This document shows positions 1-21,000 of a stretch of DNA of 64,000 nt, piece after piece. Within the stretch, counting starts at the first letter, position 1, and every line of letters starts with the position of its first letter. The DNA is taken from contig NC_067398.1 of NCBI RefSeq assembly GCF_016432865.1, positions 341,992,001-342,056,000 of the forward strand, written 5' to 3'. The DNA is from Antechinus flavipes. Lineage: Eukaryota. A model generated the notes under the pieces. The model searched no databases, had not been told where the DNA came from, and saw nothing but the letters and a program-made list of their open reading frames with translations. The translations under genes and the position numbers were made by a program.

Positions 1-770
1 AAGCATTATTCATTGGATAGTTCAAACTATATATTCTGAAGACATCTCTAAATCATCATAGCCAAAATAAGATTCATTATCTTTCCCCCAAAACTCTCCC
101 TCTTCTAAACTTCCATATTTCTGCCAAAGCTACCATCATCCATTCAGTCTCCCTGGTTCATAACCTTGGCATTATCCTGGACTCTTCACCCTCACCTCAC
201 ATATCCAATTAGTTGTCACATCTTGACATTTCAACTTTCATTACATCTCTTGCATCTAAATCCCCTCTTTCCACTCATACAGCTAACAGCTTAATTTAGG
301 CCTTCATCCATCTCTTATCTAGATTATTGCTGACAGCTTCCTAATTGGCTTTCCATCTTCAAAAGTCTCATCACTCCCCTGTTACATCTGTTGCCAAAGT
401 AATCATATTTATGGCAGATGTAACTATTCTAAACTGTTATTCCAGTCAGTGATAACAATGTGACCTTTTTCTACTCCAAGACCACTCTCTTTCCATTTAA
501 CATTTATTCCATCTCTTTCTGTTCCAACAGATCTCTGCCAGAATCTTTCTCTCCAATCTTCAATTTTTCCTATCTTCTACAAATATGTCTAGACCTCTCC
601 CATCTTCAAAATACTTAAACTTCGTAAAAAAAGAAAAGTGCATACTCATTGTCTTGATCACTTTTCAACCTTTTACACTATAACTTCACAATCAAATGAA
701 ATTGTCCTCTCTAAAGTTACAAGTGATCTTTTTTCCCTCAATAGTAATTTATTTTTCAATAAATTTCTAA
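1..770 (+). mobile_element. Ancient LINE-2 remnant
   Basis: Pyrimidine-rich sequence with L2-like phrases (e.g. aaccttggcattatcctggactctt); recognised by eye; boundaries rough. Confidence 0.4.
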
Positions 771-940
771 TTTAATTTTCTGATTCCAATTTTTCCAATT
801 AAATTTCCAATTTCCAATTTATTTTTCAACATTCATTTTTATAAGATGTTGTGTTCCAAATTCTGTCTCTCTCCCTCCCTTATCTCCCCCTCCCCAAAGA
901 CAGCAAGCAATCTGATATAGGTTATACATGAACAATCATT

Positions 941-1095
941 TTATTTTTTTTAATTATAGTTTTTTATTTACAAAACATATGCATGGGTAATCCTTCAACG
1001 TTGGCCCTTGCAAAAACTTCTGTTTCAAATTTTCCCCTCCTTCCCCTCACCCCTCCCCTAGATAGCAGGTAGTCCAATACATGTTAAAATATATG
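941..1095 (-). mobile_element. Short 5'-truncated L1 3' end inserted in an older L1 3'UTR
   Basis: T-rich tail; 13-bp direct repeat ATGAACAATCATT at 928-940 and 1096-1108. Confidence 0.65.
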
Positions 1096-1122
1096 ATGAA
1101 CAATCATTCTAAATGTTTTCAT

Positions 1123-1275
1123 GGGGCAGTTAGATGGCACAGTAGGTAGAGCACCAGCCCTGAAGTCAGGAGGACCTAAGTTCAAATCTGGCCTCAGACA
1201 CTTAACATTTCCTAGCTCTGTGACCCTGGGCAAGTAACTTACCCCCAAAAGTCTCAGCAAAAAACAACAAAAAAA
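1123..1275 (+). mobile_element. WSINE1-like tRNA-derived CORE-SINE
   Basis: GGGGCAGTTAGATGGCACAGT...GTTCAAATC (A/B boxes), CORE gtgaccctgggcaagt, A tail. Confidence 0.85.
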
Positions 1276-1559
1276 CCCAACCTATTTTCATATTTGTCAT
1301 GTTGTACCAAAAAAAAAAAAAAAAAAAAATCTGACCCAAAGGGAAAAAAAACCAAGAGAAAGAAAAAGCAAATGAACAAAAAAAGATTAAAATATTATAC
1401 CTTGATCTACACTCAGTCTCCACAACTTTCCCTCTGGATACAGATGGCATCTTCTATTCCAAGTCCAGTGGAATTGTCTGGAATCACTGCATTGCAAGAA
1501 GAACCAAGTCCACCAGGGATCTCTTAGGTGACAGACCTCACTAGGTTTTCCTCAAAAGC

Positions 1560-2340
1560 TCATACTACTTGACTTCTACACTCCGTCTGATATTGTTGAC
1601 CAAGGCAATCTCTCTTTCTTCTCTAGGTTTTTATGACAATGTTTCCCTCTTGGTTCTCCTGATTACTTTTTAGTCTCCTTTGTTGGTTTGAAATCCAAAT
1701 CTTACCTTTTCCAGTAACTCTACATGAACCTTAAGGTTCTGTCTTTGGTCCTCTTCTCTCTACTTTCTCTGGTGACCTCATCAACTTCCATGGGTTTTTC
1801 TTCTCTATACAAGTAACTCCCAGATAACCCTACTGAACATCACTAGGCTTTTTCTTTATAGAAACATTTATCATTATTCAAATCATCACTTTTTACCTGG
1901 ACTAGGGCAAACCTCCTTCTGTCTCCCTGCCTCCAGCCTCTCCCCTATGTAATCCATCCTCCACAGTTTCCAAAGTCATGCTCCTAATAATCTGATCAAG
2001 TCATTTCTCAACAAATTCCATGGATTCCCTATTTTTTTGAGGATGAAATGTAAATGCTTGTTTAATTTTTAAAATCCCTTTACAACCCAATGCCAAAATC
2101 TTTCCAGCCTCATACAGTGTTCTCCTCCCTACATTGCAGCATACATTGCATATGCTGGCCTTGCTGTTTCTTTGAATGCCTTGGCACTAGCTGTACCCCA
2201 CACCCAGAACTCACTTCCTCCTCGCCTCCACTTAGAAATTCATTCTTCCCCCCAAGATTCAGTTCATTCAAACTTTGTACTTGGAACTTTTTTCTGATCC
2301 TTCCAGTTACTGATATTTTCCTTCTCAAAATTACCTTGTA
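1560..2340 (+). mobile_element. LINE-2 remnant
   Basis: L2 3'-region-like pyrimidine-rich sequence; approximate. Confidence 0.4.
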
Positions 2341-2350
2341 TTTATTTGTA

Positions 2351-2545
2351 GGCAGCTAAGTGGCACAGGAGCTAAAAACACTTGATCTGCAGTTAGGAAG
2401 ACCTGAATTTAAATCTTGCTTCAGACACTTACTAGCTATGGTCCTGGTCCAATTTGCTCATCTGTAAAGCGGAGATAATAGTACCTACACCCCAGGACCA
2501 AATGAGATAATATTTAAAGCAAAAATATCATATAAATGCTAACTA
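2351..2545 (+). mobile_element. MIR/Mar-type CORE-SINE
   Basis: ggcagctaagtggcac...ctcatctgtaaa...gagataata. Confidence 0.6.
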
Positions 2546-2697
2546 CGACTATGTATTCATAATATTCACCCCCCCATAATATTGTCTCCCTCAACAGAAT
2601 ATAAGCTTTTTGAGAGGAGAGACTATTTCATTCTTTGTTCCCCAGTGTTTAAAGGCTTTATAACTGGTATATAGATGGTGTTTAATAAAATACTTGT

Positions 2698-4168
2698 TAG
2701 GAAAAGATGACAAAATGTTGGGAGGGGATGTGGGAAAACTGGGACATTAATACATTGTTGGTGGAGTTGTGACCTGGTCCAACCATTCTGGAGAGCAGTT
2801 TGGAACTATGCTCAAAAAGTTATCAAACTGTACATACCCTTTGATCCAGCAGTGTTTCTACTGGGCTTATACCCCAAAAGGATCATAAAGGAGGGAAAAG
2901 GACCCACGTGTGCAAAAATGTTTGTGGCAGCCCTTTTTTTTTTTTTTTTTTTTTTTAAATTATAGCTTTTTATTTACAAGATATATGCATGGGTAATTTT
3001 TCAGCATTGACAATTGCAAAACCTTTTGTTCCAATTTTTCCCCTTCTTCCCCCCATCTACTCTCCCAGATGGCAGATAGACCAATACATGTTAAATACAA
3101 TATATGTATACATGTCCATACAGTTATTTTGCTGCACAAGAAGAATCAGACTTTGAAATAGTATAAAATTAACCTGTGAAGAAAATCAAAAAATGCAGGC
3201 AGACAAAAATAGAGAGATTGGGAATTCTATGTAGTAGTTCATAATCATCTCCCAGAGTTCTTTCGCTGGGTGTAGCTGGCAGTACTCATTATTGAACAAA
3301 TGGAACCGACTTGGTTCATCTCATTGTTGAAGAGGGCCACATCCATCACAATTGATCATCATATACTATTGTTGTTGAAGTAAATAATGATCTCCTGGTC
3401 CTGCTCATTTCACTCAGCATCAGTTCATATAAGTCTCTCCAGGCCTTTCTGAAATCATCCTGCGGCTCATTTTTTACAGAACAATAATATCCATAATATT
3501 CATATACCACAATTTATTCAGCCATTCTCCAATTGATGGGCATCCACTCAGTTTCCAGTTTCTGGCCATTACAAGGAGGGCGTGGCAGCCCTTTTTGTAG
3601 TGGTAAGGAACTGGACACTTTTTATAGTATTGAATGTTATGGAATATTATTGTTCTATAAGAAACGACCAGCAGGAGGATTTCAGAGAGGCCTGGAGAGA
3701 CTTACATGAACTGATGCTGAGTGAAATGAGCAGAACCAGGAGATCATTATACACAACAGCAGGAAGATTATATGATGATCAATTCTGATGGATGTGGCTC
3801 TTTTCAACACTGATGATTCAGGCCAATTCCAATGATCTTGTGATGAAGAAAGCCATCTACACCCAAGAGAGCAGTCTATGGGAACTGAGTGTGGATCACA
3901 ATATAGCATTTTTAACTCTTTTGTTGTTTGCTTGAATTTTATTTTTTCTCATTTTTTCCCCTTTTTGATCCAATTTTTCTTGTGTAGCAAGATAATTGTA
4001 TATATACATATACATAGCTATATTGGATTTAGCATATATTTTTGCCATGTTTAACACCTATTAGACTACTTGCCATCTAGGAGAGGGGTGGAAGGAAGGG
4101 AAGGGAATTGGAACACAAGGTTTTGCAAGGATTTTGAAAATATAAAGCTTCAATTAAAAAAAAAAAAC
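2698..4168 (+). mobile_element. L1 3' fragment (ORF2 C-terminus + 3'UTR) split by an antisense L1 insertion
   Basis: Encodes a CW.GCGK.GTLIHCWW-like motif; A tail near 4157-4168; interrupted at 2934-3581. Confidence 0.85.
2939..3581 (-). mobile_element. Younger 5'-truncated L1, antisense, nested in L1
   Basis: Poly-T 2934-2956; 15-bp TSD GTGGCAGCCCTTTTT at 2924-2938 and 3582-3596. Confidence 0.85.
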
Positions 4169-4571
4169 ATATATATAATAAATACTATACATTGTGTTCA
4201 GAAAAAAAAAGTCCTTCCCTCAAGAAGCTTATATCCATTCAATCCATTTAAAATCTGATCTGTATGAGTTCAACTTCATGTAACAGTTGCCCTATCCAGG
4301 ATAAAGTCATCAATTCTAAACTTCCCACCATGCTGCTAATTTAAGCCTTGACAATCACCAGTTTACCTCAGCCTCCTCTCCTTTGATTAGAGGGCTAGAG
4401 GGCAAAAATTGGACTTTCAGCTCACTCCACTTTGTATCAACTGCTCTGCCTTGTTTCTAACTGCATGTACCCCTCTGTCTACTAGTACCAACTACACCAA
4501 ATCTTCTCCATCTTGACTCCTTTTGTGACATCTTCCCCTTTTGATTATGAAATCTTTGAAGGGAGAAATTT

Positions 4572-4808
4572 TGTGGTTATTCAGTCATGTCCAACTCTTC
4601 ATGATCCTATTTGGGGGTTTTCTTAGTAAAATGTATTGGAGTGGTTTGCCATTTCCTTCTCTACATCATTTTACAGATGAGGAAAATGAACCAAAAAGGT
4701 TTAAGTGACCCAGTAAGAGTCACCTAGCTAATATCTTGAGGTTGGATTTAAACTGGGTCTTCCTGACTCCAAACCTAGGGGTCTATCCGCTGTACTACCT
4801 AGCTGCCC
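4572..4808 (-). mobile_element. Mar1-type CORE-SINE
   Basis: ttcagtcatgtccaactcttcatga...ggagtggtttgccatttccttctc...tttacagatgaggaaa. Confidence 0.7.
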
Positions 4809-4941
4809 AGGACAGGAACTATCTTTTTTACTAATTTTATCTCCATTGCTGAGCATATGTCCTAACACGTAGTAAGTGCTTTAATAAATGTTTACTGGAT
4901 TGGATTTTAAAGATTATAAAGCAATATACAAATAGGTATGA

Positions 4942-5100
4942 GGGGCAGCTAGGTGGTGTAGTGGATAGAGTACCAGCCCTAAAGTCAAGAGGACCTGAAT
5001 TCAAATCTGGCCTCAAACACTTAACATTTCCTAGCTGTGTGACCCTGGGCAAGTCATTTAACCCCAACTATCTCAGCAAAAAAAAAAGAAAAAACAAAAC
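4942..5100 (+). mobile_element. WSINE1-like SINE
   Basis: GGGGCAGCTAGGTGGTGTAGTGGATAGAG...A tail. Confidence 0.88.
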
Positions 5101-5876
5101 TAGAAATAGCCTATGATTACTATTACTGTAGTAATTTTTATGACTTTCTTTGACTTCCTATATACAACCTGCCATAACATCCTGTACTTTATAACCTATC
5201 ATCCTATACTCTCATTCTAGCATTTGTGAAAGTCATCTACCCAAGTAAGCTAATGGACCTCACTTCCCCAAGGCTCAGCATTCAGCTAAAAAGCTCAAGC
5301 TTTTTAAAAAGGCTCAAGGCCTTTCCCTCTCAACAGTCACAAGTGAAAACTCAGCTTATCCATGTTTAGATCTTAATGATTTATGAACCAGACAATCCAG
5401 ACAGCAAGACTTTGCCTTTATTTGTACTTGTACAGAGCCAGGCTCTGACTCCCAGCGAAAAGTAAAATGAAACATAGTAAAGGAGATCCTTGGGTAGGTC
5501 CATCAGCTTCATGCCTCTATCTGGACTTCTCCTAGGAGAGTCAGATATTCAGGTTTGAGATACAAACACAATGTACTATTGAGCACTTGAGACATCTCCA
5601 TCTTGATGATCTCTCCCAAAGACACCTCTGACCTTTTTAAAGGAAGAATAAGAGGCCCAAATGAGCTGAGCACTCAGTCATAGTACAATGATAAAAAGGG
5701 CACTGACTTTACAAAATGCTATATTTTCACCACCTCTATTGCTGAATTTCATGGGCATAGATTAGTCAGTGCATTACCAGAAACAGCATAAAATTGGTTT
5801 GCAGGACAAATTCTTCATTAAAAAAGGTGTTCTACATGTAATTTCATACTGCTCATAATCAAGCAGTTCAAGGCCT

Positions 5877-6154
5877 TTATACTGGAGTTCCTTCAGCTTG
5901 GTTGTTGGCATTTTGCTTTTGAAAAGAGATTTTTTTCTCCAAATCTATCATGGGCTCCTCAATGCTGAAGTTGCCCTGCTTCTGTCGTTCTGCAAAAATC
6001 ATTGCCCGAAGCAAAGGAGGGTAAGGCACATATCGGATAGTTTCTTCCGACTTAGGGATGAAGTTCTTAAAGGCTTCTTCCTCATGCTTGGGCACCAGCC
6101 TCCAATCGTGGTACATGACCTGGTCAATCTCCTTTTCTTCACTCTCTGTCTTAC
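5877..6154 (-). CDS. MRPS34: MRPS34 exon 3 to stop
   Basis: TTTTCCCCAG|GT AAG ACA GAG; contains ORF 5877..6116; candidate AATAAA (minus strand) at 5417-5422. Confidence 0.95.
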
Positions 6155-7388
6155 CTGGGGAAAAGTTGAAGCACAGGGGTATCTATTGCTGGCACAGTCA
6201 GTCTAACCACCATTAAAGATATGGCAGTCTCTCCCCTCCCATAAACAAAGAGAAACACCAAAGAGCAATCGATCTCAAAAGTCTCCCTCCCCCACTTTCC
6301 TTACCTCGGAAAGTCAGGATCCCCCAGGCCTTTCCATGATCCAAATTCTAGAAAGCAATGACAAAAACTTGGATGAGGTCAATCCAGTGATACAAGGACT
6401 TTTCTCCAAATATTTTCCACCTTCAGCCAAGGCGGAGTGGAGAGACGTGATCATAATTATCAAAAAAGGAATCATAGAATCTCAGATGGAAGGGACGTCA
6501 GAGAACACCTAACCTGACACTGAATTGCCAGGAATTCCTGATATGTGTCTAACTTTAAGGTTATCCAGCCTGTGTTTTAAGACCTCCTGTGATGGATTTC
6601 ATTCACTTCCTCCAGAGGCTATCCGTTCCTATTCTGAGCAGCTAATTATTAGGAAAAGTGTTGTCTAGAGCAAGTCAAAACCTGTTTTTCTCTGCTTCTA
6701 CTCTAGACCATAGAAAAGGTAAGTCTATCAAATATAAATTAGAATGAGACAAATTGGGAGGAAAATAACTAGCCTATGACAAGTACAGCAGAGATTAAAA
6801 ATCAAGTGCGACCCTCGGACGCCCTCGATTAAGCCTGGGATATTGAGTCTGCTTAAATCAGGAGAGGCAGAGGCCACGTCCTGCACCCGGCTTTCATGGC
6901 CTTGATGGCTCACAGGGTGACCTTGAGGGAAAGCCCCTTGGTCCCGTCCCCCAACGACAAGGAGGCTTTTCCAGCGGGGGTGTGGGGGGTGGGGGACGAT
7001 CGGGTAAAGAAAAAGGGGAGTCGTGCCGGCGGGTGGCGGCGAGGGCAGGAACGGGGCAGTCACGCACCGGTGCAGTGTAATCGGCGCGGACGCGGGTGAG
7101 CTGCCAGTAGCAGGGCTCGTCGTGCTGCCACAGCCAGGACTTGCGCGTGACGAGGCGGCCCAACCCGAAGCACGGCAGGCGATTAAGCAGCTGCAGGAGG
7201 CGGCTCTCGCGCCGCACGTCGGCCCAGGCTTTCTCGGGGAGGCGGCGGCCGCTGCGCGTACGAGTCATAGTTTCGTAGTCCAGGGCGAAGCGCTCCGAGT
7301 CCCGCGGCCGTGCCTTCAGTTCCCGGTAGGCGCGCACCTTGCGGGCCAGCTCCGCGATCAGCCTCGGCCGTACTTTCTTGCGCCCCAT
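5877..7388 (-). CDS. MRPS34: Mitochondrial ribosomal protein S34 (3 coding exons: 7068-7388, 6305-6347, 5877-6154; 213 aa)
   Basis: Translation [21 protein letters not shown]...[16 protein letters not shown] | [14 protein letters not shown] | [29 protein letters not shown]...GTPV matches MRPS34 as I recall it; GT-AG at both introns, phases 0 and 1, 321+43+278=642 nt. Confidence 0.97.
6305..6347 (-). CDS. MRPS34: MRPS34 exon 2
   Basis: TAG|AAT TTG GAT CAT GGA AAG GCC TGG ([14 protein letters not shown]); donor G|GTAAGG; 43 nt. Confidence 0.95.
7068..7388 (-). CDS. MRPS34: MRPS34 exon 1 coding part
   Basis: ATG at 7388 within ORF 6894..7421; donor CCG|GTGCGT at 7067; 321 nt. Confidence 0.95.
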
Positions 7389-7526
7389 CTCACTAGCCCT
7401 GACTTCCCGCCTCTGCACCAACCTGAAGCTCGGAGAGCGGAGATCTCAGCTCTCCGCCGGAGCCGTAGCACCGCCCACCACGGCCCAGAGCCGGAAAGAC
7501 CTGGTGTCTCCGGCATCCGGGGCCGG

Positions 7527-7763
7527 ATGGCGCACGCCGGAAGGAAAATAACTCGAGGACGTTTGGGAAAGCGAGGTGGCCTTAAAGGGAAGCAGAGCCA
7601 TGATTGTGATGGCTCGGGGCCACTATCTGAAGAGCTGAGGAGGTTAAAAGAAGGCGGAGAAGATTCAAAGGGAGCTGGAGTGGAGGAGACCGGCTAACGG
7701 AACTTGGGAGGAGAGGGACGGGGGGACGATACTGAGAGACGGACCACGGATCTGTAGATACAG
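7527..7763 (+). pseudogene. EME2: Probable EME2 exon 1 remnant
   Basis: ATG in good Kozak (GGCCGGATGG) 139 bp from the MRPS34 ATG; 3' end reads ...ATC TGT -- A GAT ACA G (cf. human VCVDTA), followed by AG instead of GT; in-frame TAA at 7695-7697; 237 nt vs about 247 nt recalled for human. Confidence 0.45.
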
Positions 7764-8829
7764 AGGGCGGGGGCGGGGTGGGGCTTAAATGGCGAAATCC
7801 AAGGGGTGTAGCAGACGGGAGGCGGGGCATTTGGGCCAAATCTGAAGGACTTCCGGATGGCTCGGAAGACCCGCGGCATCCTTCCTTTTCCCGGTTGTTT
7901 TTAATCACTGGGCAGCACGTGGAGCCTGTCACTGGTATTCGAAGCCTCCCCATGGGAAAACTTGTCTGGGCTGCGCAAAAACAAAAATAATGTGTGAGAT
8001 TATATCCCATCAGGGAAACCAAATACCCTTGTACATACAAGGTATTTTCGGGATACGAAGAAGGCACTGTAAGGTAGGGGGCGGGGCCGTGTGGAAGGAA
8101 GTGATGCTTGATTCTAGAAGACAAAAATGGAGAAGCAACTGGTTCCAAGCGTGGAACAGAGGCCCACGCGTGGAATGTCATCCGTGAGGAAAGCCACGGA
8201 GGCCGGTTTGGTCAGACTGGAAAGAGTTCTGGGAAGGGAAATGTGGCAATTAAGTCTATAAGGGTGAGCTGGAGCCAAAGAGTTTTCCATCTTAGAAATG
8301 GAAGGGAGCCGCTGGAGCTTTTGGAACGTTTTAGACTTATGCTTTTAGGAATATCATATTGGCAGCTGTGAATGTTAGATTGCAAATAAAAGTTACTGCA
8401 GGAAGGAGAACCACGTAAGAGCCTATGTAATGTGATAGACTAGCCTGAAGTGACAAAGGACTTAACTAGATTGGTGAAGAGAAAGGAGGAATACAAGAGA
8501 TGTAGAACTAGAACAAAGACTTGACATCTGACATCTGACTGAATGGGTAGGGGTGAGGAGAAGACAGTTATGGATGATTCTGAGGTGGACTGAAAGATGG
8601 TGGCACCTGCAATCAAAATGGGAACGTTTGGAAGCAGAGTGGGCTCGGAGAAAACCATAATGAGTTTTTTGTGTACATGCTGAATGTGGAAATGCCTATA
8701 ACACATTCGGGTAAAAATGTTTTAGGCAGTCAGAGTTAGGTAGGGCATACAGATGGAGGGATCCTCTGCATAGAGAAAACTGAATTCATGGAAATGCAAA
8801 TCAAGACAACTCTGATGTACTATTACACA

Positions 8830-9675
8830 TCTCTCAGATCGGCTAAGATGACAAGAAAAGATAATGCTGAATATTGGAGGGCATGTAGGAAAACAACTAC
8901 TGATGCATTGTTGATGGAGTTGTGAACTAGTTGTTGCTCTGAACAGTACGGAATTATGCCCAAAGGGCTATCAAACTCTGCATGCCTTTTGACCCAGCAG
9001 TGTTTCTACTGACCTTATATCCCAAAGAGATCTTAAAAGAGGGAAAGGGATCTACATGTGCAATAATGTTTGTGGCAGCCCTTGTTGTAGTGACAAAGAA
9101 TAGGAAAGTGAGTGGGTGCCTATCAGTTGGAGAATGGCTGAATGAGTCATGGTATATTAATGTTATAGAATATTATTGTTCTATAAGAAATGATCAGCAT
9201 TGATCAAGAGGCCTGAAGAGACTTACATGAATTGATACTGAGTGAACTGAGTAGAACCAGCAGATCATTGTATCTGGCAACAAGAAGATTATGCAATGAT
9301 CAGTTCTGATGGATGTGGCTCTTCAGGCCAGTTTCAATAGTGTTGTAATGGACAGAGCCATCTGCATCCAAAAAGAGGACTATGTGGATTGAATGTGAAT
9401 CACAACAAAGTATTTTCACCTTTTTTCTTGTTGTTTGCTTCCTTTTTGTTTTTGTTCTTGTTTTTTTCTTTTTTGATCAGATTTTTCTTGTGCAGCATAC
9501 TTGTGGAAATATATATAGAAGAACTGCACATAAGTTTAATATATTGGATTACTTGCAATCTAAGGGAGAGTGGGGGGTAAGGGAAGGAGAAAAAAATTTG
9601 GAACACAAAATTTTATAAGGGTGAATGCTGAAAACTATGCATATATTTTGAAAATAAAAAGCTAAAAAAAAAAAT
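8830..9675 (+). mobile_element. L1 3' fragment
   Basis: ORF 8982..9203 (PFDPAVFLL.LYPKE..YYCSIRNDQ) is L1 ORF2 C-terminus; 3'UTR and A tail near 9664-9675. Confidence 0.85.
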
Positions 9676-10431
9676 CAAACTGAACTCATGGATACAAAGT
9701 TTAAGACAGTCTAGAAGGAGTCAGGAAATGGATGAGCAAAGGAGAATGGGAATGGCATCACCAAAACCCAGGTGGCAGAAGGGTATTTAGGATGTTAGTA
9801 AGTAAAGTCCAACTACTGCAGATCGGACCAATAAAGCACATTGGATTTGTCAAGTAAAAAAATGTTTAAAAATAACAATTTTACTTGAATGATATAGTCA
9901 AAAGCTATATTGAAGAGCTGAATGAGAGGAGATGAAAGCAGACAGTAAAGGAGTATATATGTAATTTTAGGAGTTTGATTCTAAAAGGCAAGGAGATGGG
10001 TTGATACTTGAAAAATTAACTAGAGGTTTTTTAAAAAGGATGGGGGAAAAACAAAAATATCCTGAATAAGGAGAGAGAACAAAGAGGGTATAGAAGCACT
10101 CTGTCCAGGAAAACAGAGGTGATGAAGGCCATTCTTCATCAATATAAAATCAATGTTTTAGAACCTATAGTGTAAATAAAAGAGGAAAGAATGCCTCCAT
10201 TTTGTCATGGGACTTTGAAATGTAGAGTAGGGGAAAGGAAAGAGCTCATGGTAAATGACACGTTTTCTCAAAGTCTCAGTCCAAGACCTCTACAAATAAG
10301 GATAAGAGATGGTCTGGAAGGCCTGAGGAAATATGAAGTTTAAATGAGATGATATCAGCAGGGCATTTCCAATAGACTTAGGATGGAGAGAGCCATCTGC
10401 TCTCTGGAGATGAGAAGGGAGAAGATGAAGA

Positions 10432-10737
10432 GAGAAGACTATGGAGACTAAATGTGAATCACTACATAGTTTTTTCACCTTTGTTGTTTGCTTGTTTTTT
10501 TTTCCTTCATTTTTTCCTTTTTGATTTGATTTTTCTTGTGCAGCATAAATGTGGAAATATGTTTAGAAGAATTGCACGTGCTTAACATATTGGATTACTT
10601 GCCATCTAGGGGAGGGGGAAGAGGGAAGGAAAAGAAAAAATATGGAACACAAGGTTTTTCAAGTATGAATGTTGAAAACTATCTTTGCATATATTTTGAA
10701 AAATGAAATGTTACTATTATTTAAAAAGAAAAAAAAG
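10432..10737 (+). mobile_element. L1 3'UTR fragment
   Basis: Same 3'UTR phrases as the 9380-9675 copy; A-rich end. Confidence 0.7.
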
Positions 10738-11228
10738 ATGAGGTTTAAAACATCACCTTGGAGAATTGATAGCCCTTTAGGGAAGACAATCCAGTGCCTT
10801 GCCACTATGCTACCCTGTCATTCCAAAGGTCATCTGCATCTCTGTAGCTTCATTTTAGATCCGTATTATTCAGACTTGTACCATGGGTTCTAAAGCATTC
10901 AGATTCTACACTGACTACCTTCAAATAGGAAAGAATGGCATGCAAGAAGGATCTCTTTTTTGACATTAACAACCTTTAAAGTAAAAATTTTTACAGAATG
11001 GTCAAAATTTTTATCAAAACCAGGTGACTGGTCATAGATAAGATTCCTTCCCCATTTCCCTGCTCACTTCTTCCATCAGCTTTCATCAGGGAGGTGGTAT
11101 TGAGTGGGAGTAGAGGAGAAAAGAGTGACTGGCCCACTGAACTACAGGCAGCCGCTGAGGCTTCTGGTCAACTCAAGAGTGCTCTTTTCTCCCTGATTTC
11201 CCCAACTCCAGCTATTCTAGAATCCAGC

Positions 11229-13400
11229 TTTTTTTTTTTTTAATTTTTTTTTGTTTTTAAAGTATTAAAAATTTAAATAGAAAATAGAAAAAGAAAAAAG
11301 AAAACGCAAAAACATTGTCATGTGCATAGTTATGAAAATTCAAAATATGTAACAACACTTTCCATTTTAAGAAAGCATATATAATAGAAGACATTATATT
11401 CAAAACTGCCCATCTTTTCTGTTTCTAAGTAGTTTTCTTGTTTTCTGCTATGTATTTTTTATTCTCTCCCCCACCCCCTACATCCCCCCAAGCAGGCTAG
11501 AGTTAAACATGGATATATTTATGAATAAGTTTTATACACATACATTTAAAACTATTAATATGGCTGACTCATAGATTTTTCTTTCGATTAAATTTTTTTT
11601 AACTGAGATTAATGATTACCATCCCTACTTTTTTTTCCTAATTCCACTCTTGTCATTGTTACTATTTGTGTATATCTCATTTCCTACTCTTGTTAACTCT
11701 TCTATTTTACTTCTACTCTCTAGCTTGCCTTGCTATTTATTACTTAACCTCCTGCCCATCTGAGGATCTCTCTTATCCTCTCTCCCCACCTTTTTATCTT
11801 TTACATTAGTTTGGATACCTTATTCTACTCCAGTACTCTATACAACTTCTGTACATCTCATTCCCTTCCCTAATTTTTAAAAATAGATCTGTGTTGTACC
11901 TTTCTAGGTATATATAATATATTGTTACCTTTTTAAATTATCCCTTATGTGAGTAGGATTTCAGAACTACCAGTCCCCCTCCCCCATCTAATTCCTTTTT
12001 GTTGATTCCTGTTCTTATATCTCATTCATATAGTATAATTATTCTTTGCCTTTTTCTACATTTTTGCTTTTTAGAGTCACATCATACTCATCTCCAGTCC
12101 AGTCTTTTTTTTTTTTTTGAATACCTAATTGCTAATAGACAATCTTAGATATGATTTATCTTTCCATATATAAAACATAAAAAAGTTTGTCTTCATTGAG
12201 CCCCTTGAAATTAATCTTTGATGTTGGCTCTTACATATGATTTATACTTAATTTTGCTGGAAATATTTTCGGCACAACCCTAGCTCTTTTGATTACTGAC
12301 CAAAATTCCAGGACTTGTGTTCTTTTATTGTAGCCATTGCTAAAATCTGTGTAATCCTTATTGTAGTTCCAATTGTTGGATTATCTGTTGGTTTTGCTTA
12401 TAAAACTTCTGGGGGTGGTGGTGGTTGAAATTTAGCAGTGATCCCCTCTTGTTCTAGCACATCAGGATAATTTTCTCTTATTTCATGTATTATTATATCA
12501 AGATTCTTTTTTTTTGTCATAGCTTTTCCAGTTCTTTATTTTCTCTTCTTGATTTGTATTTCTTTTGAGATGTCTCACATGTCTCATTCTTTTCTATTTT
12601 TCATTCTGTGTATTTTATTACTTCTAGGTCTCCTTAACTTCACTGAATTTCTTGTCCAATTTTAATTTTCAAAGAATCATTTTCTTCTTTTAGACGGCAT
12701 CTCCTTTTCCTAGTTTTCTTTTCATAAACTTGCTTTTTTTGAATTGTTATTTTCTTAGATTTTTTTCTCAATCTCATTTGATTTTTAAAATCTTTTTTGA
12801 GTTCTTCTGTAAATTCTTTCTGGGCAGATAAATATTTAACATTACTCTTTGGAATAGTGGTTTTTTATGTCAACATCCTAAGATGAACCTTGGTCTTCCC
12901 TATTGCGTATTACCACTTTTTATAGTTATTTTTTTAAGAGCCCTTTTAATGGAGTAGGGATGGGGTCCTTCAGTTCTCCCCTCTGGCCTGGAGCCCCAAA
13001 CCAAGAATTCCACCTTCCTCTAAGTGGTCACAGCCAGCATTCTCTGCCCCACTGGGAATGTGCTGGTTCCATCATCTCAGCAGCACGATTTGGCATCTTC
13101 TGGGACTCAGACTCACAGTACTCATGCTGTCTGGGAGATTTAAGTTTCTCTTCAGCCAGCCCCAGGGATCTCCCCTTGCTGTTTCAGCAGAGTTAGCCTG
13201 AAGGTGTAAACACTTCACTCTGGCCAAACCTCTGTCCTGGCATTTTCAGATCTTCTCCAATTATCCTGGGAGGATCACCATTCTGCCCCAACTCTTGTTT
13301 TTCACTGGTTTCTTTTACAATTTTGTTTTGTCTGGTGGAGAAATCTAGAGAGCTTGGAATTTTCTGATCTGTCCTCTCTCCAGAATCCCCTTCCAAACCC
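11229..13400 (-). mobile_element. L1-family element, possibly HAL1 (5'UTR + ORF1 remnant + 3'UTR, no ORF2 seen)
   Basis: Poly-T at 11229; L1-like 5'UTR at about 12900-13400 (tcagaaaattccaagctctctagattt); about 2.2 kb with no recognisable RT. Confidence 0.55.
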
Positions 13401-13549
13401 TGCTTCTTAAAACTCTTGTTCACAACTTGTTAACAATGTGAGGGTCATGATTTTTAAATCAGTAAATGCTTGATTTGTATACCTATATGCCTAAGAATAT
13501 GAGATAAGTTCTCAGTTGAAGAGGGGTGGTAAGTGGAAAATTTAAGCAG

Positions 13550-13653
13550 CCCTGTGTTAGAAAATGCTAGTTCCAGTGTCCTCAGGGAGGCTTTGGGATC
13601 CCTAGATTGTGAGCGTGTCATAGAGCCCCAGCTGCAGTCTCACCTAGAAGAGA
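13550..13653 (+). pseudogene. EME2: EME2 exon 2 remnant
   Basis: PVLENASSSVLREALGSLDCERVIEPQ vs human AILEDAGADVLMEALEALGCECRIEPQ (15/27 identical); then a frameshift and S-L-T-TAG-K-R (TAG 13645-13647) where human has SLRWTR. Confidence 0.85.
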
Positions 13654-14691
13654 TGTGTGCACAGTGCTTTTCCTATACCTCAGAACCCCAAAGCAGGAGA
13701 TGCCCCGTCTCCTCCCTCAGCAACACTCCTGTTTGTACCATGCCGTCTGTCCCAAGTGTGGTCTAGTTCTAGCAGTACTTCCAGGCAATTTCAGCTCTTC
13801 TGGAAGTTGCTGGCTCGGATAGCCTAATGACAGCTCTAGAGTCAGTCCTATTGACAACCTGAGGTTGTGGGCTTTGGTCTGACCATACAGTAGTATTGTC
13901 TTCACTGACTCTGCTACTGCATAGTTGGTTGCAAAAGCTCAGGAAGTCCTTGATAATTCCGAAATCAGCTTTTCAAAAGCCTCATCTCACTGGCACAGAT
14001 GCCAGAGAGGAGGAAGTCAGGGCTACTTCCTGGCAGTCTTTATTCCGAATACTAAATTGTTTCCCAACCATGTCCTGTTCTTCCTCCCCTCCTTCCCCGC
14101 CCATACATCTAAAGTTGAAAAGTCAGAACCAGATCAGACTGAAAAAGAAAGGGATTAGACTATCTAATGTCCAAGTCTCTCCAGCTATACACTGGTGGTT
14201 TTTACCCATTCACCCTCTGTTGCTCAGCAATCTCTTTTTAACTGAATTATCTCCTACTACTGTCATTCTGGCACCTAATCCTCCTTTGGGGAATAACTAC
14301 TCTTTTTTTCTGGAGCAAAGAAGGAAGTCTCAGGCTAGAATGAAAAAAAGGGAGAGGGGCTGGACCTGCAATACAATTTTAGCAGCAAGGCAAGTCTGGA
14401 GAGCAGACATTAAACTGGACAGGATCCTGAAGAGTTGGAGAAAGGAATTATTGGCATCATATTCTAGGAGCTTTGGGGTGAAAAGGAGAGGTGGGTGGTG
14501 TAAGCCTTATGCATGCCACATTACTTTATGAGTAAGAAAAGAGTTCTCAAGTTCATCAACAAACACTACTGACTTTATTGAAGGCAAAGTTTGAAGAAAA
14601 AATAAGACTCGACACAAAGCAAGACCCCAGTTTCCTCATTGCCCTTTCTCATGAGGGTTCTACCACACTAGCTCCTTTCTTTTGGCGGCAG

Positions 14692-14770
14692 GGTCATTTC
14701 ACTGCTGACTGTTCCTTGGATTGTACCTGAGAATGCTGCTGGTTACTCACTACCACCTGGATTATCAGTG
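14692..14770 (+). pseudogene. EME2: EME2 exon 4 remnant
   Basis: CAG acceptor, then 19 nt (human 21, so a frameshift) before VPWIVPENAAGYSLPPGL vs VPWISPETTARPHLAVIGL; ends TG|GTAG; 79 nt vs about 92. Confidence 0.75.
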
Positions 14771-14991
14771 GTAGTTCCTTGCTTTGCTCTGTTCCAGGGG
14801 CCTTAAGGGATGCAAAGAAAAGCCATCATTCAACAGTGTGCTTAGTGAGATGGGACTTTCCTCAAGTCTCCTTCAGTGTTAGCCATCCCAGACTACCCAA
14901 GGCCACAAAGGAAACTACACCAAGATAGCAGTTTTCTGTGGGTGAGGAGAGGAAAAATGAATGAACCAAAAAGACAAAAGTTTTTGCTCAG

Positions 14992-15064
14992 GCTCTTCCA
15001 ATCTGATGCCAAGGGAGTTCAGCAGGAGTCAGATGGAGTAATATCCAGCTCAAAGGTGGCAGAG
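14992..15064 (+). pseudogene. EME2: EME2 exon 5 remnant
   Basis: TTTTTGCTCAG|G then LFQSDAKGVQQ...ISSSKVAE vs SRQHVSRGTQQ...VSWPEVEE; donor position reads AT rather than GT. Confidence 0.6.
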
Positions 15065-15309
15065 ATGAACACCCTGCTACTAAAGACTAGGGAGGTTGAT
15101 TTCTGGCCCTAAGCAGCTTTGAGGGCCTTTTTTCTGAGGAACTGCCCTAGTGCTGGGGCAGGAAGGGCACAAGAGATGCTGAACATTACTATTTGCAATT
15201 GCAATCATCTGTGATCCTTTAAGTTGCTTTCTAAATCATGTTAGATTAGTAGGGTACTGCCTCCTTCTAAACTGTACTTTTTGTCCCTTTATCTCCTCCT
15301 CCTTCACAA

Positions 15310-15398
15310 ACCTTGGTGCTATTACAACTGCACTCACAGCAGGAGCTAAGCCAGCATGTGTGTGCAATTACAAAGGCCATTGCCCATGGTCAGTACAA
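15310..15398 (+). pseudogene. EME2: EME2 exon 6 remnant
   Basis: TLVLLQLHSQQELSQHVCAITKAIAHGQYK vs ALVLLQLWANLDVLLVASWQELSRHVCAVTKALAQYPLK; 27-nt deletion; acceptor reads AA rather than AG; phase-2 donor AA|GT kept. Confidence 0.88.
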
Positions 15399-16263
15399 GT
15401 GCTTCAAGCCCTGGCCAAGGTAGGCTTAGGAGAGATCACTGCCAATCTTTTAGAATAACAGTTGTACTAGCACACATTTAATCAGAAATTTTGTATTCTA
15501 AGCATTCAGTTCTCAGTTCCAGCCTTGATTTCATTACTCACTGTCTAGCCGAGGAAACTTCTATTCATGTATACTTTCATCTATACAATGAGTAGTAAAG
15601 ATTCCAATCTCATCTATAAAATGACAATTCATAACAAACGGATCTCCAAAGTGTGTCCCTTCTGGCTTGACATCCACAACCCTATGAGTCAGATCATCTT
15701 AAAAATACAAGATTCGGTGTTCTGTGCTTCCCCCTTGGGGATGTAAGTTCTCCAACATCATCCCTTGGTCTGCCTTACTAAATGGGCTGCCTCTTTTTAG
15801 GAGCAATGACAATGCCAATTCAAATCGAGGCCTATCAGGCTCTCTACTAGGAGCCAGGCCAGAGGAAGTAAGTCAAGGTAAACTTAAGTAGAATGGAAAC
15901 CAGGAGCAAGGATGCACAGGCTTGCTGAGCAGGGCACTCAAGGAAAGACAGTGGTCACAGAAACATGGGCTGCTGATCAAGTCTTCTAACACAGACAGGA
16001 CTAAGACTTTTTGCAATCCCCTACCTACAAGTAATCAGGGCCAAACACTTTATCATCTGGCTCAGTTGTCATACTAGCCCTTTAGCTTTCACCCTGTTCA
16101 GCTTCCACAACCCTGTGAGTCAGATCATCTTACATCCCCTCCCCTTATACCCTCCAACCCCAGACCAAGAGGGTTCAAAAGCTGTTATCAGATTACTGGA
16201 TAAGGGGGAAGGACAGGAGGTGTGGGAATTACCAACTTGTACACGATCATCGGGCACCCTTAG

Positions 16264-16437
16264 GCATATGCACCTCGCACAACAGAGCAGGAAGGCCTGT
16301 CTCTGCTCAGTGACACTGCAGTAAAGAAAGATGATCTGATTCAGGTCTGAAGAGTCATCCCAGATTTATCTCTTTGAGTTTCCCATTTTGTGGAATCTTC
16401 ACTTTTTGTGTGAATTGATTTATGGCAAAACCCATAA
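16264..16437 (+). pseudogene. EME2: EME2 last exon remnant
   Basis: TAG|GCA acceptor; gap-free alignment to ALEACSTERERMGLLADLPV...RRVGPDLSRRI with TGA at 16348-16350 and 16375-16377 (both Arg positions in human) and a third TGA at 16411-16413. Confidence 0.88.
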
Positions 16438-17761
16438 AGGTTAAAAAAAAAAATCCTCTCCCTCCATTTCCCAGCTTTTCAGGAGTGTTTGTTAGTACAG
16501 CAATTGCCTTTTTCTGGATGCTTTCCTGCCCAGGCAGAATAACAAAGACATGGGAAATGAGGGTAAGATTTTTTGCAGCAGAAATTATGGGTGGCCAGAA
16601 ACATGGAATGGGGCAACAAAGCAAGAGATGTAATTAAGGAACAAAGTGGGAAATATCAGAAAGCTGAATAAGGCGAGAGCTAAAGGGCTAGTATGACAAC
16701 TGAGCCAGATGATATAAATTGATGGCTATTCTGTTGAGCCAAGATTTTTTTTTCTTCTTCAATGAAGAGGTTCACTAAAGTTTAGAATTTTACCATTCCA
16801 GCCTAGATAGGATGCAGTTACAATTTTAATAAGCAGGGGATTAGAGTGCCTGGCAACTCACATCATCTTAGCAAGATTCTATGAACCTTAAGGCCCCTTA
16901 GCTCTCCAGAGGCACAAGGCCAAAATTCTGCTATTGATTCTGCCACCAAAAATCACTTCCTTCAAGACTTAAGTTTTCTGATTAGTAAAAAAGGGCTAAT
17001 TCCCTACCCCAAGTGCATCACAACAGTACTCAGACCACCCCTCACATATCACATATCCACCCAACTCCTAAATATGGGCCCATTTACTTTTATGGCATCT
17101 GTAATTCAATATAAACTATTTTGACTTTATTACAGTGATTTGATACAGTCTCTGATACAGGAGCAGAAAAGAAGCTGACAACATGCAAAAGCAGGTGTTT
17201 TTTTTTTTTGTTTTTTTTTTTTAAATTCTAGATCCTAGTTCTGAAGCCCCAAGGGGTGAGGAGGGAACACAATATTTATTAATCAGGCTTTTCTCCTTGC
17301 CCCTCTCAGCTGGACATTTGAGAATAACTGAGGCTAGGCTGCAGCATTATCCTCCCCCTCCCCTGAGGCAGGAGTGATTGGAGTGATCATATGCTGTCCC
17401 CTGATGGAGGCAGTAGCACTGCAATCTCCACCACCCTACAGAGGACCTGGAGTGACCCTTGGGCTAAGTCCAGAATAAGGGCTCAGGGAGCCTTACTGTT
17501 ATCATCTGTTTCCAAGCTGATGCTCTTGGGTTCACGGCACAGTCTTCCAGTCCAGGTGAGGAGCAGGTGCTGTGTCCTTAAACTAGTTCCTGAATGAGGG
17601 GAGTATCTTGGCAAATTCAAACCAGTGGAGCTGTCCCCAAGGAAGGGGATGGGCAACCTCCCCTCCCAACCTTCCCTCTTGTCCCAAAAGTGTGTGGAGG
17701 AAAGGGAAAAGAAAGAGAAGCCACCCCAAGCCCAACAAGGCAGTTTTCATTGGAAAATAAG

Positions 17762-18096
17762 TTAAGTCCGTCGACACCTCTTCCTTTGACATGGCTTGGC
17801 CTCTGGGCTCCCCGAGCATGCTGCCGTCTTGGGCGACTGTGACGGTAGGGGGCTACAGTTCATGCTCAGGACCCAGCCCAGTTTGTTGTGCAGCACCTGC
17901 TTGAGGCCAGGAGGTAAAGGCAATCCTTCCAGTGTGTCTCCAGAATCAGGCAACAGTTGACGAAGACGGTAGCAACACAGATACTGCAGGGAAGTGAGGC
18001 TGGCACAAGAACGAATCACCTTCATGCTGCTCTTGGCGGCAGTGGAGCAAACCATGGGGTAGAATTTCTTGTTCTGCAGTTTGGTGGCGGCAACTC
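17762..18096 (-). CDS. SPSB3: SPSB3 last coding exon (SOCS box)
   Basis: [21 protein letters not shown]...CRRT*; AATAAA (minus strand) at 17275-17280. Confidence 0.95.
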
Positions 18097-21000
18097 CTGG
18101 CAGGAGACATGAGGTGAGTGAAAGGGAAATCACTGGCCTCTCTCCTCTATTTGGGGGGCACAGCCCAGGGTACCTAGACCTAATCTACGCTGCCCGGGAC
18201 AAGACAGACCAGGATCCGAGCGTCTGAGAGGATGGAGACCAAAGACTGGGAGAGTCACTTACAAAGGGCCTCCCCTTTCTTTCCCTAGGGAAGAACTACC
18301 CAAAGCAAGCACAGATCCACGGATTCTGGACTCCTCTGATTTAGTCATGCTCTTTCTAAGGGCTCCAGAGGCAACAGCATGTTCTCCCTAGATGCCTTGA
18401 AGTCATCCACATGTAAAAGACATTCCATGTTGTAACTTGAAGCTTCAGCTCCCACCCTTACCTATGCATTTCCTGTTTTTGAAGAAGGTCAGTGTCCCAT
18501 GCCAAGTGTCTAGGTGAACCCCGATGATGGAACCCTGGCCAAACCGTGAGGAGAAGCTCATCTTGTCACCCTTGTGATGGAGAAGTCCTGAAACGGCAGT
18601 CCCAAAGGGAAAACTAGATTTGGTGGATCTCATTTCTAATTCCAGGGCTCCATTTCTAGTCTAATTCCCCTTTCCTAGTCCTACCTTTTGAATGCTACAG
18701 AGATACAGCATGATCTTTCCTACAATTTTTGATCCTTTCTCCCCACACCCTATCCCAATCTGCCCACCCAGAGCTTTCAGTCACCTGTAGGCATAAACCC
18801 TCCCAACCCATCTTCTAATAAGATTTTCACCTCCCCGAGTCTTAGCAACAAGCACCTTTTTCTTTTGTTCTCATCAGTCCTCATATGCTCACCTGTGTAG
18901 GAGAGGCCCCAGCTGTCTTCATCCTTGCCCAGCAAGCTGCAGAATGTATGGCGGTACTTATCCAGATTTACATCTGATGTCCCAATACCAACCATCTACC
19001 AGAAACAGTGGGGAGAAGGGAAGGAGAACACTAAGCCATGGGAGAGGTGTCCTGTAGTCAGCACCCGTGTTCTACAGCAGTATCCCCCACATTCCCCTAA
19101 TATACCATATCGGTGCCGTAGACTGGGGAAGTCATCTTAATTTCCCAAAAATGCTGGCCTTCACATAGTTCCTTGTTCCCTCGTATGGCTGCTGTGCCAC
19201 AGCTATATTCCATGTGGAAATTGACTTTGCGGTTGTCACAACTTAGCAGAGTGGCCGTCGATTTGTTCAGATCATCCCATACCCAATCAAAATCTGTATT
19301 GGAGGAAAAAGAGTCTATCTTGGGGACAAGCAAGAGGAACTGACCCTACAACATACCCAAGGCCAAATCTAACATCTTTCTTTATTGACACCATCTGCTG
19401 ATGTGACTGATGCTAACAGGGTAAGAAAAAGGCCCAGTAAAACAGCAAAACAGGATCACGTTCATTGCTGAATGAGAGAACCACTTGGGAGGTCCAATCC
19501 AGAGACATTCACCGCCCCCTCCCCCCCTCCCCCAAGTTTCTTTGACCTCAACTAGCTACATACAGCAGATCCTGGTCAGGTAAAGAGATACATCCTGCTT
19601 TGCTACTGATGTATCCTCACAACTACTCTTCATTTTCTAGACTTATTCTCAATCCGGGAAAAAAAATAAAGGACAAACTATGGCCACAAAAATTCTTAAC
19701 CTCAGTTCCATGTTCTCTTTTGGGTACTGAACCCCAAGGGTATACTTACTCTGCTCTCCATTAAGAGGCAGTTGTTATAATTTCCTTTCATAAAGCAAAC
19801 TGCCCCCGCATTTTCTTACAGCTGTCCAACGAGGGGAAAAAAACAAGTGAAAGACTACTACAGGATCAGCCAGTTCCCAAATTCCATTGGCCTGGGAACC
19901 AAATGCAGGCAATATTAAGCCAACTACCACCTGAGTCCAGGCAGGCTGGCTCTGACGCCCTTAGAAACAGCCAAGAGCCCCAAGAAAATCATTGCTAACA
20001 GCTAATTAGCTTTGGCTATTGGCTATTGTGGGTCCCCGTAGGAAATCCGGAGGCCCCTTACAGTCATCTTCCTCGCCACACTGGCAGTCCCTGGTTCGAT
20101 GGCTGGTATGGAGGCTGGCACAGTACGGAGTTTCACTTTGGCTCTCACAGTCGCAGTAGGATTCCCCAGTCACAGGCACAGCACTCGGGATGGAGGGTGG
20201 CAGGGAAGGGAACTCTGCCTCTGAGTCTGAGTCACTGTGCTGTCAAACAGAAAGCCAAGGGCAGGTCAGGGTATCAGCCTGTCCAAAACTTAGGCATAGT
20301 GGTGGCCCACGGGCTAAGGCATAGGAAAAGGCGCAGAAAAGACAACAAAGCCATGACCAGGGTTCCTTCCTACCCTTCTAACTGGTTAAGAGGTCTCTGT
20401 GGTAGAGTAGATAGCTTGGGGAACATGCTCCCAGCACCATCTTCTGTGCTAAGTTAGGAGAGCAGAGAACATCATACTTCCTCTCTCCTGGAGAAGAATC
20501 TTGGAATACCTGGCCTAAGACTGTCCCACATAGGTAACATACACCACTTGGAAAAAAACAAGTTACCTGCTTCACTCTCCTGAGTGCCTATGCTTTTCAA
20601 TGTACAGAGATTCCCTGTCGGTTTGCCCTATCTTTAACGTCCACCTCCTAAGAGTTTATTTGAAAAGGTGAGTTATTATATCATCATAAATATTACTAAA
20701 CAAGCTCTATGACATTACATTTTCACACAGGCTTTAAGTTGCTGAATTACCCTCCAAACCAAGCAACTTCCAGCTTTTACTTTATGGAAATTTGACTGGG
20801 ACGAGTGCAAAGTAAGCAACACGTTTTTAATAAAGAACTTCCCTGGGACTGAGGATCCTCAAGAAATCAGAGGTTTACACTAGGGCTTTCACAATCCATG
20901 GATAGCTTCTGAACATTCAGAAACATAGTACTTATTGCAAAGATGCCATAAGGAATTTCAGGCAGCATTTATTAAGTAATCATTACCGATAGCATGAGCT

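Follow-up and report, generated by a model that had tools for sequence, protein, structure and literature searches.

Does the marsupial Antechinus flavipes still possess a working EME2, the gene that encodes the non-catalytic partner of MUS81? The question is raised by a stretch of 64,000 nucleotides (nt) of its genome (contig NC_067398.1, positions 341,992,001 to 342,056,000; hereafter the window, with position 1 as its first letter), in which no gene is annotated in the slot between MRPS34 and a SPRY/SOCS-box gene. An earlier sequence-only reading of the window, made without database searches, had proposed that the slot holds EME2 as a dead unitary pseudogene. We followed up this proposal by comparing the slot with intact and broken EME2 loci of other mammals. 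In our assessment, window positions 7829–16423 are a decaying EME2 at its ancestral place between MRPS34 and SPSB3, a reading to which we assign a probability of about 0.9.

To define what an intact gene looks like at this place, EME2 coding sequences were rebuilt from the loci of the bat Desmodus (L003) and the monito del monte Dromiciops gliroides (L004) by picking the best GT-AG introns. The top-scoring rebuilds had exactly the annotated lengths, namely 376 amino acids (aa) in the bat and 430 aa in Dromiciops, with eight coding exons each. The Dromiciops gene (L004 3759–9482, with its ATG at L004 9482) has an open frame, GT-AG introns and an EME1-MUS81_C domain (PF21292) that spans exons 7 and 8, exon 7 covering PF21292 positions 2–32, while the bat gene likewise carries PF21292 and lies head-to-head with MRPS34. 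Exon 7 of Dromiciops matched human EME2 (7f6l_B; E 1.7e-24, 87.9 bits) better than EME1 (E 1.5e-14, 56.6 bits). Because exon 7 prefers EME2 and exons 7 and 8 carry EME1-MUS81_C, we regard both genes as true EME2 orthologues. For Monodelphis domestica, the annotation places a 433-aa gene with ERCC4 and PF21292 domains in the same slot. The arrangement of MRPS34 and SPSB3 with an intact EME2 between them is found in the bat, Monodelphis and Dromiciops. The Antechinus locus was taken from GCA_016432865.2 (CM028217.1, 21 kb; L005), to which window positions 1–17388 are identical without a gap (17388/17388), and the window contains no N. Among Australian marsupials, DNA was compared for three species from two orders: Antechinus, Sarcophilus harrisii in two independent assemblies (L001 and L002, each ~90% identical to the window), and koala (L006).

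The Antechinus slot proved to be colinear with the intact Dromiciops EME2 along its whole length on the plus strand (blastn), and its exon remnants share 62–73% DNA identity with the Dromiciops exons. At the protein level, a tblastn search of bat EME2 against window positions 7001–18000 returned three main colinear plus-strand matches, which correspond to exon 2 (13554–13640; 59% identity, E 2e-5), exon 6 (15295–15408; E 2e-6, with a 9-residue gap) and exon 8 (16264–16401; E 1e-3, with two in-frame stops). The same query also matched exon 4, as SLLTVPWIVPEN. When Dromiciops EME2 was searched against the whole window, exons 2, 5, 6 and 8 were matched, all of them in the slot, with 80% identity over 20 aa for exon 5. 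The claim that exons 2, 4, 5, 6 and 8 survive as plus-strand remnants in the expected order was thus upheld both by tblastn and by the colinear DNA alignment to Dromiciops.

A close relative of EME2 is its paralogue EME1, the MUS81 partner in G2/M, which has the EME1-MUS81_C fold and an ERCC4-like domain as well and to which the exon 6 remnant aligns weakly. However, EME1 resides at another locus, outside the window, and both the remnants and the Dromiciops orthologue score far better against EME2. Indeed, when the exon 6 piece was compared with the whole PDB, human EME2 (7f6l_B) was the best match (E 0.0015, 21.8 bits), with EME1 next (E 1.5, 12.5 bits). The exon 2 piece matched residues 82–110 of the same EME2 chain (E 0.031), although an alphaRep/HEAT repeat artefact ranked top. 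Given the synteny and the closer likeness of the remnants to EME2 than to EME1, we accept the orthology; the remnants in the slot are real and EME2-derived. Other searches with single pieces returned little. A 37-aa piece of exon 2, which is too short a query, retrieved four repeat-type proteins, each matched in up to 8 stretches, and no EME2 from a library of 1.8 billion proteins, and a 28-aa piece of exon 8 had no match in the PDB. Pfam found nothing in the pseudo-exon pieces beyond a weak PF21292 match in exon 8 (E 0.11, 13.2 bits against a cut-off of 27.4).

How badly is the gene damaged? At its 5′ end, a deletion of ~510 nt, whose junction lies at 7828/7829 on the plus strand, took away the 5′ leader and the complete coding exon 1, which measures 388 nt in Dromiciops, together with the splice donor of that exon. 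The sequence-only reading had offered an open reading frame (ORF) at 7527 as the probable exon 1. This assignment has to be given up, because window positions 7381–7828 align to Dromiciops L004 10008–9565, upstream of the EME2 ATG, so that the ORF is promoter or intergenic DNA. What follows is the remnant of intron 1 (7829–13551, plus strand), which has grown to ~5.7 kb, compared with ~2 kb in Dromiciops, and contains dispersed repeats between blocks that are colinear with the Dromiciops locus (blastn).

The exon 2 remnant (13552–13665, plus strand, as are all remnants below) has suffered an 8-nt deletion after 13635, a TAG at 13645–13647 on a Trp codon and a 15-nt deletion after 13660, and its donor GTGAGT was removed by a 9-nt deletion after 13666. 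The frameshift and TAG that had been described at this Trp position are exactly where they were said to be, the frameshift being the 8-nt deletion just before the stop. In a three-way alignment, the end of exon 2 had appeared to contain a 17-nt insertion, which was ruled out once koala and bat were added; the alignment then resolved into the 15-nt deletion and the 9-nt donor deletion.

Exon 3, which the sequence-only reading had not found with confidence, does exist as a remnant at 13909–13998, having lost its acceptor AG with a 2-nt deletion, with a 1-nt insertion and a 5-nt deletion inside and a donor changed from GT to AT (13999–14000). Another candidate for this exon, at 14560–14620 (QTLLTLLKAKFEE), was ruled out by the DNA alignment. 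In exon 4 (14692–14770), deletions of 2, 2 and 18 nt add up to a net loss of 22 nt, and the literal frame meets a TGA at 14728; one of the 2-nt deletions is located at the start of the exon, in agreement with the frameshift proposed there. Exon 5 (14992–15064) carries a 21-nt deletion and an AT in place of the donor GT (15065–15066), while exon 6 (15310–15398) has an AA instead of the acceptor AG (15308–15309), a 27-nt deletion and a 4-nt deletion that weakens its donor. Here too, the AT donor, the AA acceptor and the 27-nt deletion had been placed correctly from the letters alone.

Exon 7 has almost vanished. Only ~45 of its 190 nt are left, as scraps at 15954–16001, whereas both splice sites and the bulk of the exon were deleted, and with them the first half of the EME1-MUS81_C domain. 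The trace of exon 7 previously suggested at 15908–15924 aligns to Dromiciops intron 6 and was therefore a misassignment. In exon 8 (16264–16423), two CGA codons have become TGA, at 16348 and 16375, there is an 8-nt deletion, the literal frame meets a further TGA at 16411, and the region of the original stop is deleted. All three TGA coordinates agree with those reported before, and those at 16348 and 16375 indeed fall on CGA Arg codons of Dromiciops.

Taken together, frameshifts affect exons 2, 3, 4 and 8, with at least five frameshifting indels overall, and canonical splice sites are broken at the exon 2 donor, the exon 3 acceptor and donor, the exon 5 donor, the exon 6 acceptor and both sites of exon 7. 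A continuous ORF with a start codon is absent, exon 1 being deleted and the rest interrupted by the frameshifts and by the stops at 13645, 16348 and 16375. A complete PF21292 domain is also absent, since its exon 7 half is deleted and its exon 8 half is a weak match with two stops. Thus, while the window copy shares its position and orientation between MRPS34 and SPSB3 and its eight-exon layout with the intact EME2 of Dromiciops and Monodelphis, it differs from the Dromiciops gene, with its open frame of 430 codons, GT-AG introns and EME1-MUS81_C, in having neither exon 1 nor most of exon 7. With its start exon deleted, exon 7 nearly gone and the other exons disrupted by stops, frameshifts and defective splice sites, 7829–16423 cannot encode a protein.

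To understand when the gene died, the locus was aligned across marsupials, as the sequence-only reading had suggested, using Sarcophilus, koala and Dromiciops, and this revealed shared lesions. Nearly all of the Antechinus lesions are common to Sarcophilus, in both of its assemblies. Among them are the deletion of exon 1, those in exon 7, the two TGA stops in CGA codons, the splice sites changed to AT and AA, and the deletions of 8, 15, 21 and 27 nt. In a four-way alignment, the breakpoints of the ~510-nt deletion, which blastn showed as well, lie at the same positions in Sarcophilus, while koala still has exon 1. Sarcophilus also has lesions of its own, such as a larger deletion in exon 4 and, in exon 2, an in-frame TAG on a Gln codon that lies upstream of the 8-nt deletion common to both species (L002 ~3700, L001 ~3702). 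Between Antechinus and Sarcophilus, the exon remnants are 92.0% identical (597/649) and the sequence outside them is 92.1% identical (2194/2381; Fisher p 0.87). The shared lesions and the equal identity of exonic and non-exonic sequence show that EME2 had died by the time the two dasyurid tribes of Antechinus and Sarcophilus parted from their common ancestor, and that it has drifted neutrally since. With a functional orthologue at the same locus in the outgroups (Dromiciops, Monodelphis and, with 376 aa, the bat) and neutrally evolving remnants in Antechinus, the locus shows two of the properties that mark a unitary pseudogene, and we class it as unitary-type. The central claim of the sequence-only reading, a dead EME2 at the ancestral locus, therefore stands, with a missing start exon, next to no exon 7, broken splice sites, frameshifts, stops and drift at the rate of introns behind it.

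The loss is not confined to Antechinus or to dasyurids. The koala MRPS34 locus also carries an EME2 pseudogene, in which the start ATG has become GTG, exon 1 has several indels, exons 2 and 6 contain stops, exons 3, 5, 6 and 8 are frameshifted, the exon 5 acceptor is deleted and a deletion of ~690 nt has taken out exon 7. The proposal of a loss in this lineage was accordingly right for Antechinus and too narrow in scope. Three lesions are common to koala and the dasyurids. At the exon 2 Trp codon, bat and Dromiciops read TGG, koala and Antechinus read TAG, and Sarcophilus reads CAG, which is one step from TAG and two steps from TGG. The 9-nt deletion of the exon 2 donor, whose GTGAGT is kept in bat and Dromiciops, has identical boundaries in koala, Antechinus and Sarcophilus, and the 4-nt deletion at the exon 6 donor is shared as well. 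Differences between koala and Antechinus are spread evenly over the codon positions (26.4/26.3/25.0%, p 0.95), unlike those between the intact Dromiciops and bat genes, which served as control (34/25/50%, p 1.5e-9). This flat profile means that no constraint is detectable after the koala–Antechinus split. Nor are the exons better conserved than their surroundings, with a koala–Antechinus divergence of 22.9% in exon remnants and 18.3% in flanking non-coding sequence.

On the basis of the three shared lesions, we favour, albeit with considerable reservation, a single inactivation that followed the split from Dromiciops and preceded the koala–dasyurid (Diprotodontia–Dasyuromorphia) split. In such a scenario, EME2 would have been inactivated once on this branch and would then have decayed lineage by lineage, the dasyurids losing exon 1 and most of exon 7 to deletions and acquiring the two CGA-to-TGA stops, and koala gaining stops and indels of its own. 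At a similar, slightly lower level of confidence, we lean towards a loss on the Australian stem as such, which would make natural MUS81-EME2 knockouts of Diprotodontia and Dasyuromorphia and, if the usual tree holds, of Peramelemorphia too. A stem loss of this kind would date to roughly 50–60 million years ago. The slot is without an annotated protein-coding gene in Trichosurus, Vombatus, Notamacropus, Macrotis, Antechinus and Sarcophilus, whereas gene models of 308 aa in koala and 172 aa in Petaurus are annotated in it, both lacking any Pfam domain and both probably annotation artefacts. The loss probably extends to the whole Australian marsupial radiation rather than to dasyurids alone, and much of this radiation may have been without EME2 for tens of millions of years.

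Several points weigh against this account and are best considered together. The koala–dasyurid link comes down to three shared lesions, while most lesions are lineage-specific. The TGG-to-TAG change could have arisen in parallel, as Sarcophilus has CAG at this codon and parsimony favours shared ancestry by one step only, and the exon 6 donor lost its 4 nt within a GTGAGTG motif, which is prone to slippage, and still has a GT. For wombat, possums, wallaby and bilby, the evidence consists of absent or domain-less annotation. Hence, dasyurids and diprotodonts, and perhaps bandicoots and bilbies, could have lost EME2 independently after a relaxation of constraint, in which case the three shared lesions would be homoplasies. 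The predominance of unshared lesions, the CAG codon of Sarcophilus and the repeat-like motif at the exon 6 donor would all fit such a history, as would the convergent EME2 loss in two mole-rat lineages, which marks the gene as prone to loss (PMC8851862). However, the 9-nt exon 2 donor deletion has the same boundaries in three species, parsimony at the Trp codon points to an ancestral TAG, the codon-position differences between koala and Antechinus are flat against the Dromiciops–bat control, and an intact annotated EME2 is absent from every Australian species examined. We therefore consider independent inactivation unlikely, though the most serious competitor of a single loss.

The remaining explanations concern the state of the gene in Antechinus itself. 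The remnant could still be active, for instance through a non-coding transcript that starts at a bidirectional MRPS34 promoter, or through a short peptide, and the CpG-rich promoter on the MRPS34 side is indeed kept (GC fraction 0.54 at 6–8 kb) and alignable to Dromiciops. Yet the exon remnants evolve just like introns, EME2 has lost its 5′ leader along with exon 1, and no Rfam family was found in the slot. The longest open frame, 222 codons at 13863–14528 on the plus strand, overlaps exon 3 out of frame, has no significant Pfam match and does not stay open in Sarcophilus, where stops and frameshifts interrupt it, so that we discarded it as a chance ORF. Residual activity is thus very improbable, and to judge by these patterns the remnant most likely does nothing. 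We rate marginally lower still the idea that the syntenic copy died while a relocated or duplicated EME2 stayed functional at another place in the genome, in which case the gene would have moved rather than been lost. The lack of a second EME2-like match in the 64-kb window, the part of the genome that was searched (tblastn with Dromiciops EME2), speaks against it, it is rare for a multi-exon gene to be relocated in functional form and for the parent to decay afterwards, and, to our knowledge, the mammals examined have a single EME2 copy, at this locus. Finally, sequencing or assembly errors in an intact gene can hardly be invoked, which disposes of one objection foreseen by the sequence-only reading. 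More than 20 lesions, including the 510-nt deletion, are reproduced in two separate Sarcophilus assemblies, and in neither dasyurid does the RefSeq annotation place a gene in the slot. Against all of these, the reading of 7829–16423 as a dead EME2 in place is the one we retain.

The borders of the slot agree with the earlier description. MRPS34 (5877–7388, minus strand) is intact and lies head-to-head with the EME2 slot; its first exon, inside an ORF at 6894–7421, and its last exon, at 5880–6116, both match PF16053 (E 1.9e-18 and 2.8e-15, respectively), and the product of the first exon is 98% identical to Sarcophilus MRPS34. The region at 7389–7828, to which no strand is assigned, is the promoter region shared by MRPS34 and EME2 and holds the ORF at 7527. 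On the other side, tail-to-tail with the EME2 remnant, the 3′ exons of a gene with SPRY and SOCS-box domains occupy 17762–18633 on the minus strand (SOCS box PF07525 at 17762–18133, SPRY PF00622 at 18445–18633). We name this gene SPSB3 because of its synteny, and its orthologue borders the slot in every marsupial examined. Pfam therefore backs, on both flanks, the syntenic slot from which the proposal had started.

Some further observations were made within the locus. The dispersed repeats in intron 1, at 8855–9674 and 10428–10739, have several other matches in the Antechinus locus with 68–78% identity; they include two related copies ~1 kb apart, and the ORFs in them have no Pfam match. In intron 2, positions 13794–13847 (plus strand) encode an exon-2-like peptide, ALLEVAGSDSLMTALESV, which is 61% identical to residues 80–97 of bat EME2 (E 0.23). 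Koala has the same stretch (E 0.017), 24 nt of Dromiciops intron 2 resemble exon 2 of the same gene more weakly, at the DNA level (83%), and in the bat no such stretch was seen. This resemblance may mean that part of exon 2 was duplicated long ago in marsupials. The koala gene model on the dead slot spans L006 7100–9775, and the koala exon 1 remnant keeps a recognisable WEICDSEPESPASS stretch (ORF at L006 8973–9446) despite its GTG start and indels.

What, then, is lost with EME2? In human cells, MUS81-EME2 acts in S-phase fork cleavage and restart and in telomere maintenance in cells that use alternative lengthening of telomeres (ALT), which need MUS81-EME2, whereas MUS81-EME1 acts in G2/M, a division of roles that the sequence-only reading had stated in agreement with Pepe & West (2014; PMC5092538). 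The loss of EME2 as such is already known, as the gene is a pseudogene in the naked mole-rat and the blind mole-rat (PMC8851862), and this precedent lessens the surprise of the marsupial case; it also shows that EME2 is dispensable in some mammals. The mole-rat and marsupial cases are both natural losses of EME2 in mammals with otherwise normal genomes. The mole-rat losses, however, are recent, occurred twice independently and were read as adaptations to subterranean life, whereas the marsupial loss appears far older and clade-wide and has no obvious ecological correlate. A report of EME2 loss in marsupials was not found in the full-text literature when EME2 was searched together with marsupial, gene loss, pseudogene or Tasmanian devil.

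A speculative tie between the loss and the unusual telomeres of dasyurids had also been raised. This idea is weakened by our results, as telomere length dimorphism was described as unique to Dasyuridae (PMC3458001) while the koala gene is dead too, and EME2 loss alone cannot explain the dimorphism given that koala also is without EME2. An ALT-like mechanism was proposed for the male germline of the dunnart (PMC8853506). If it is right, does telomere elongation there proceed without EME2, the factor that human ALT cells need?

The finding has a practical side, in that the annotation of the koala and sugar-glider slot could be corrected, the domain-less models sitting on a dead gene. For the biology of these animals, it suggests that the S-phase role of MUS81-EME2 would have to be met in another way, and that these marsupials would lean on MUS81-EME1 or other nucleases for the fork restart that MUS81-EME2 performs in human cells. 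If the loss is indeed radiation-wide, Australian marsupials would constitute a natural experiment on how far EME1 and other nucleases can cover the roles of MUS81-EME2, with the opossum and the monito del monte, which retained EME2, as close controls.

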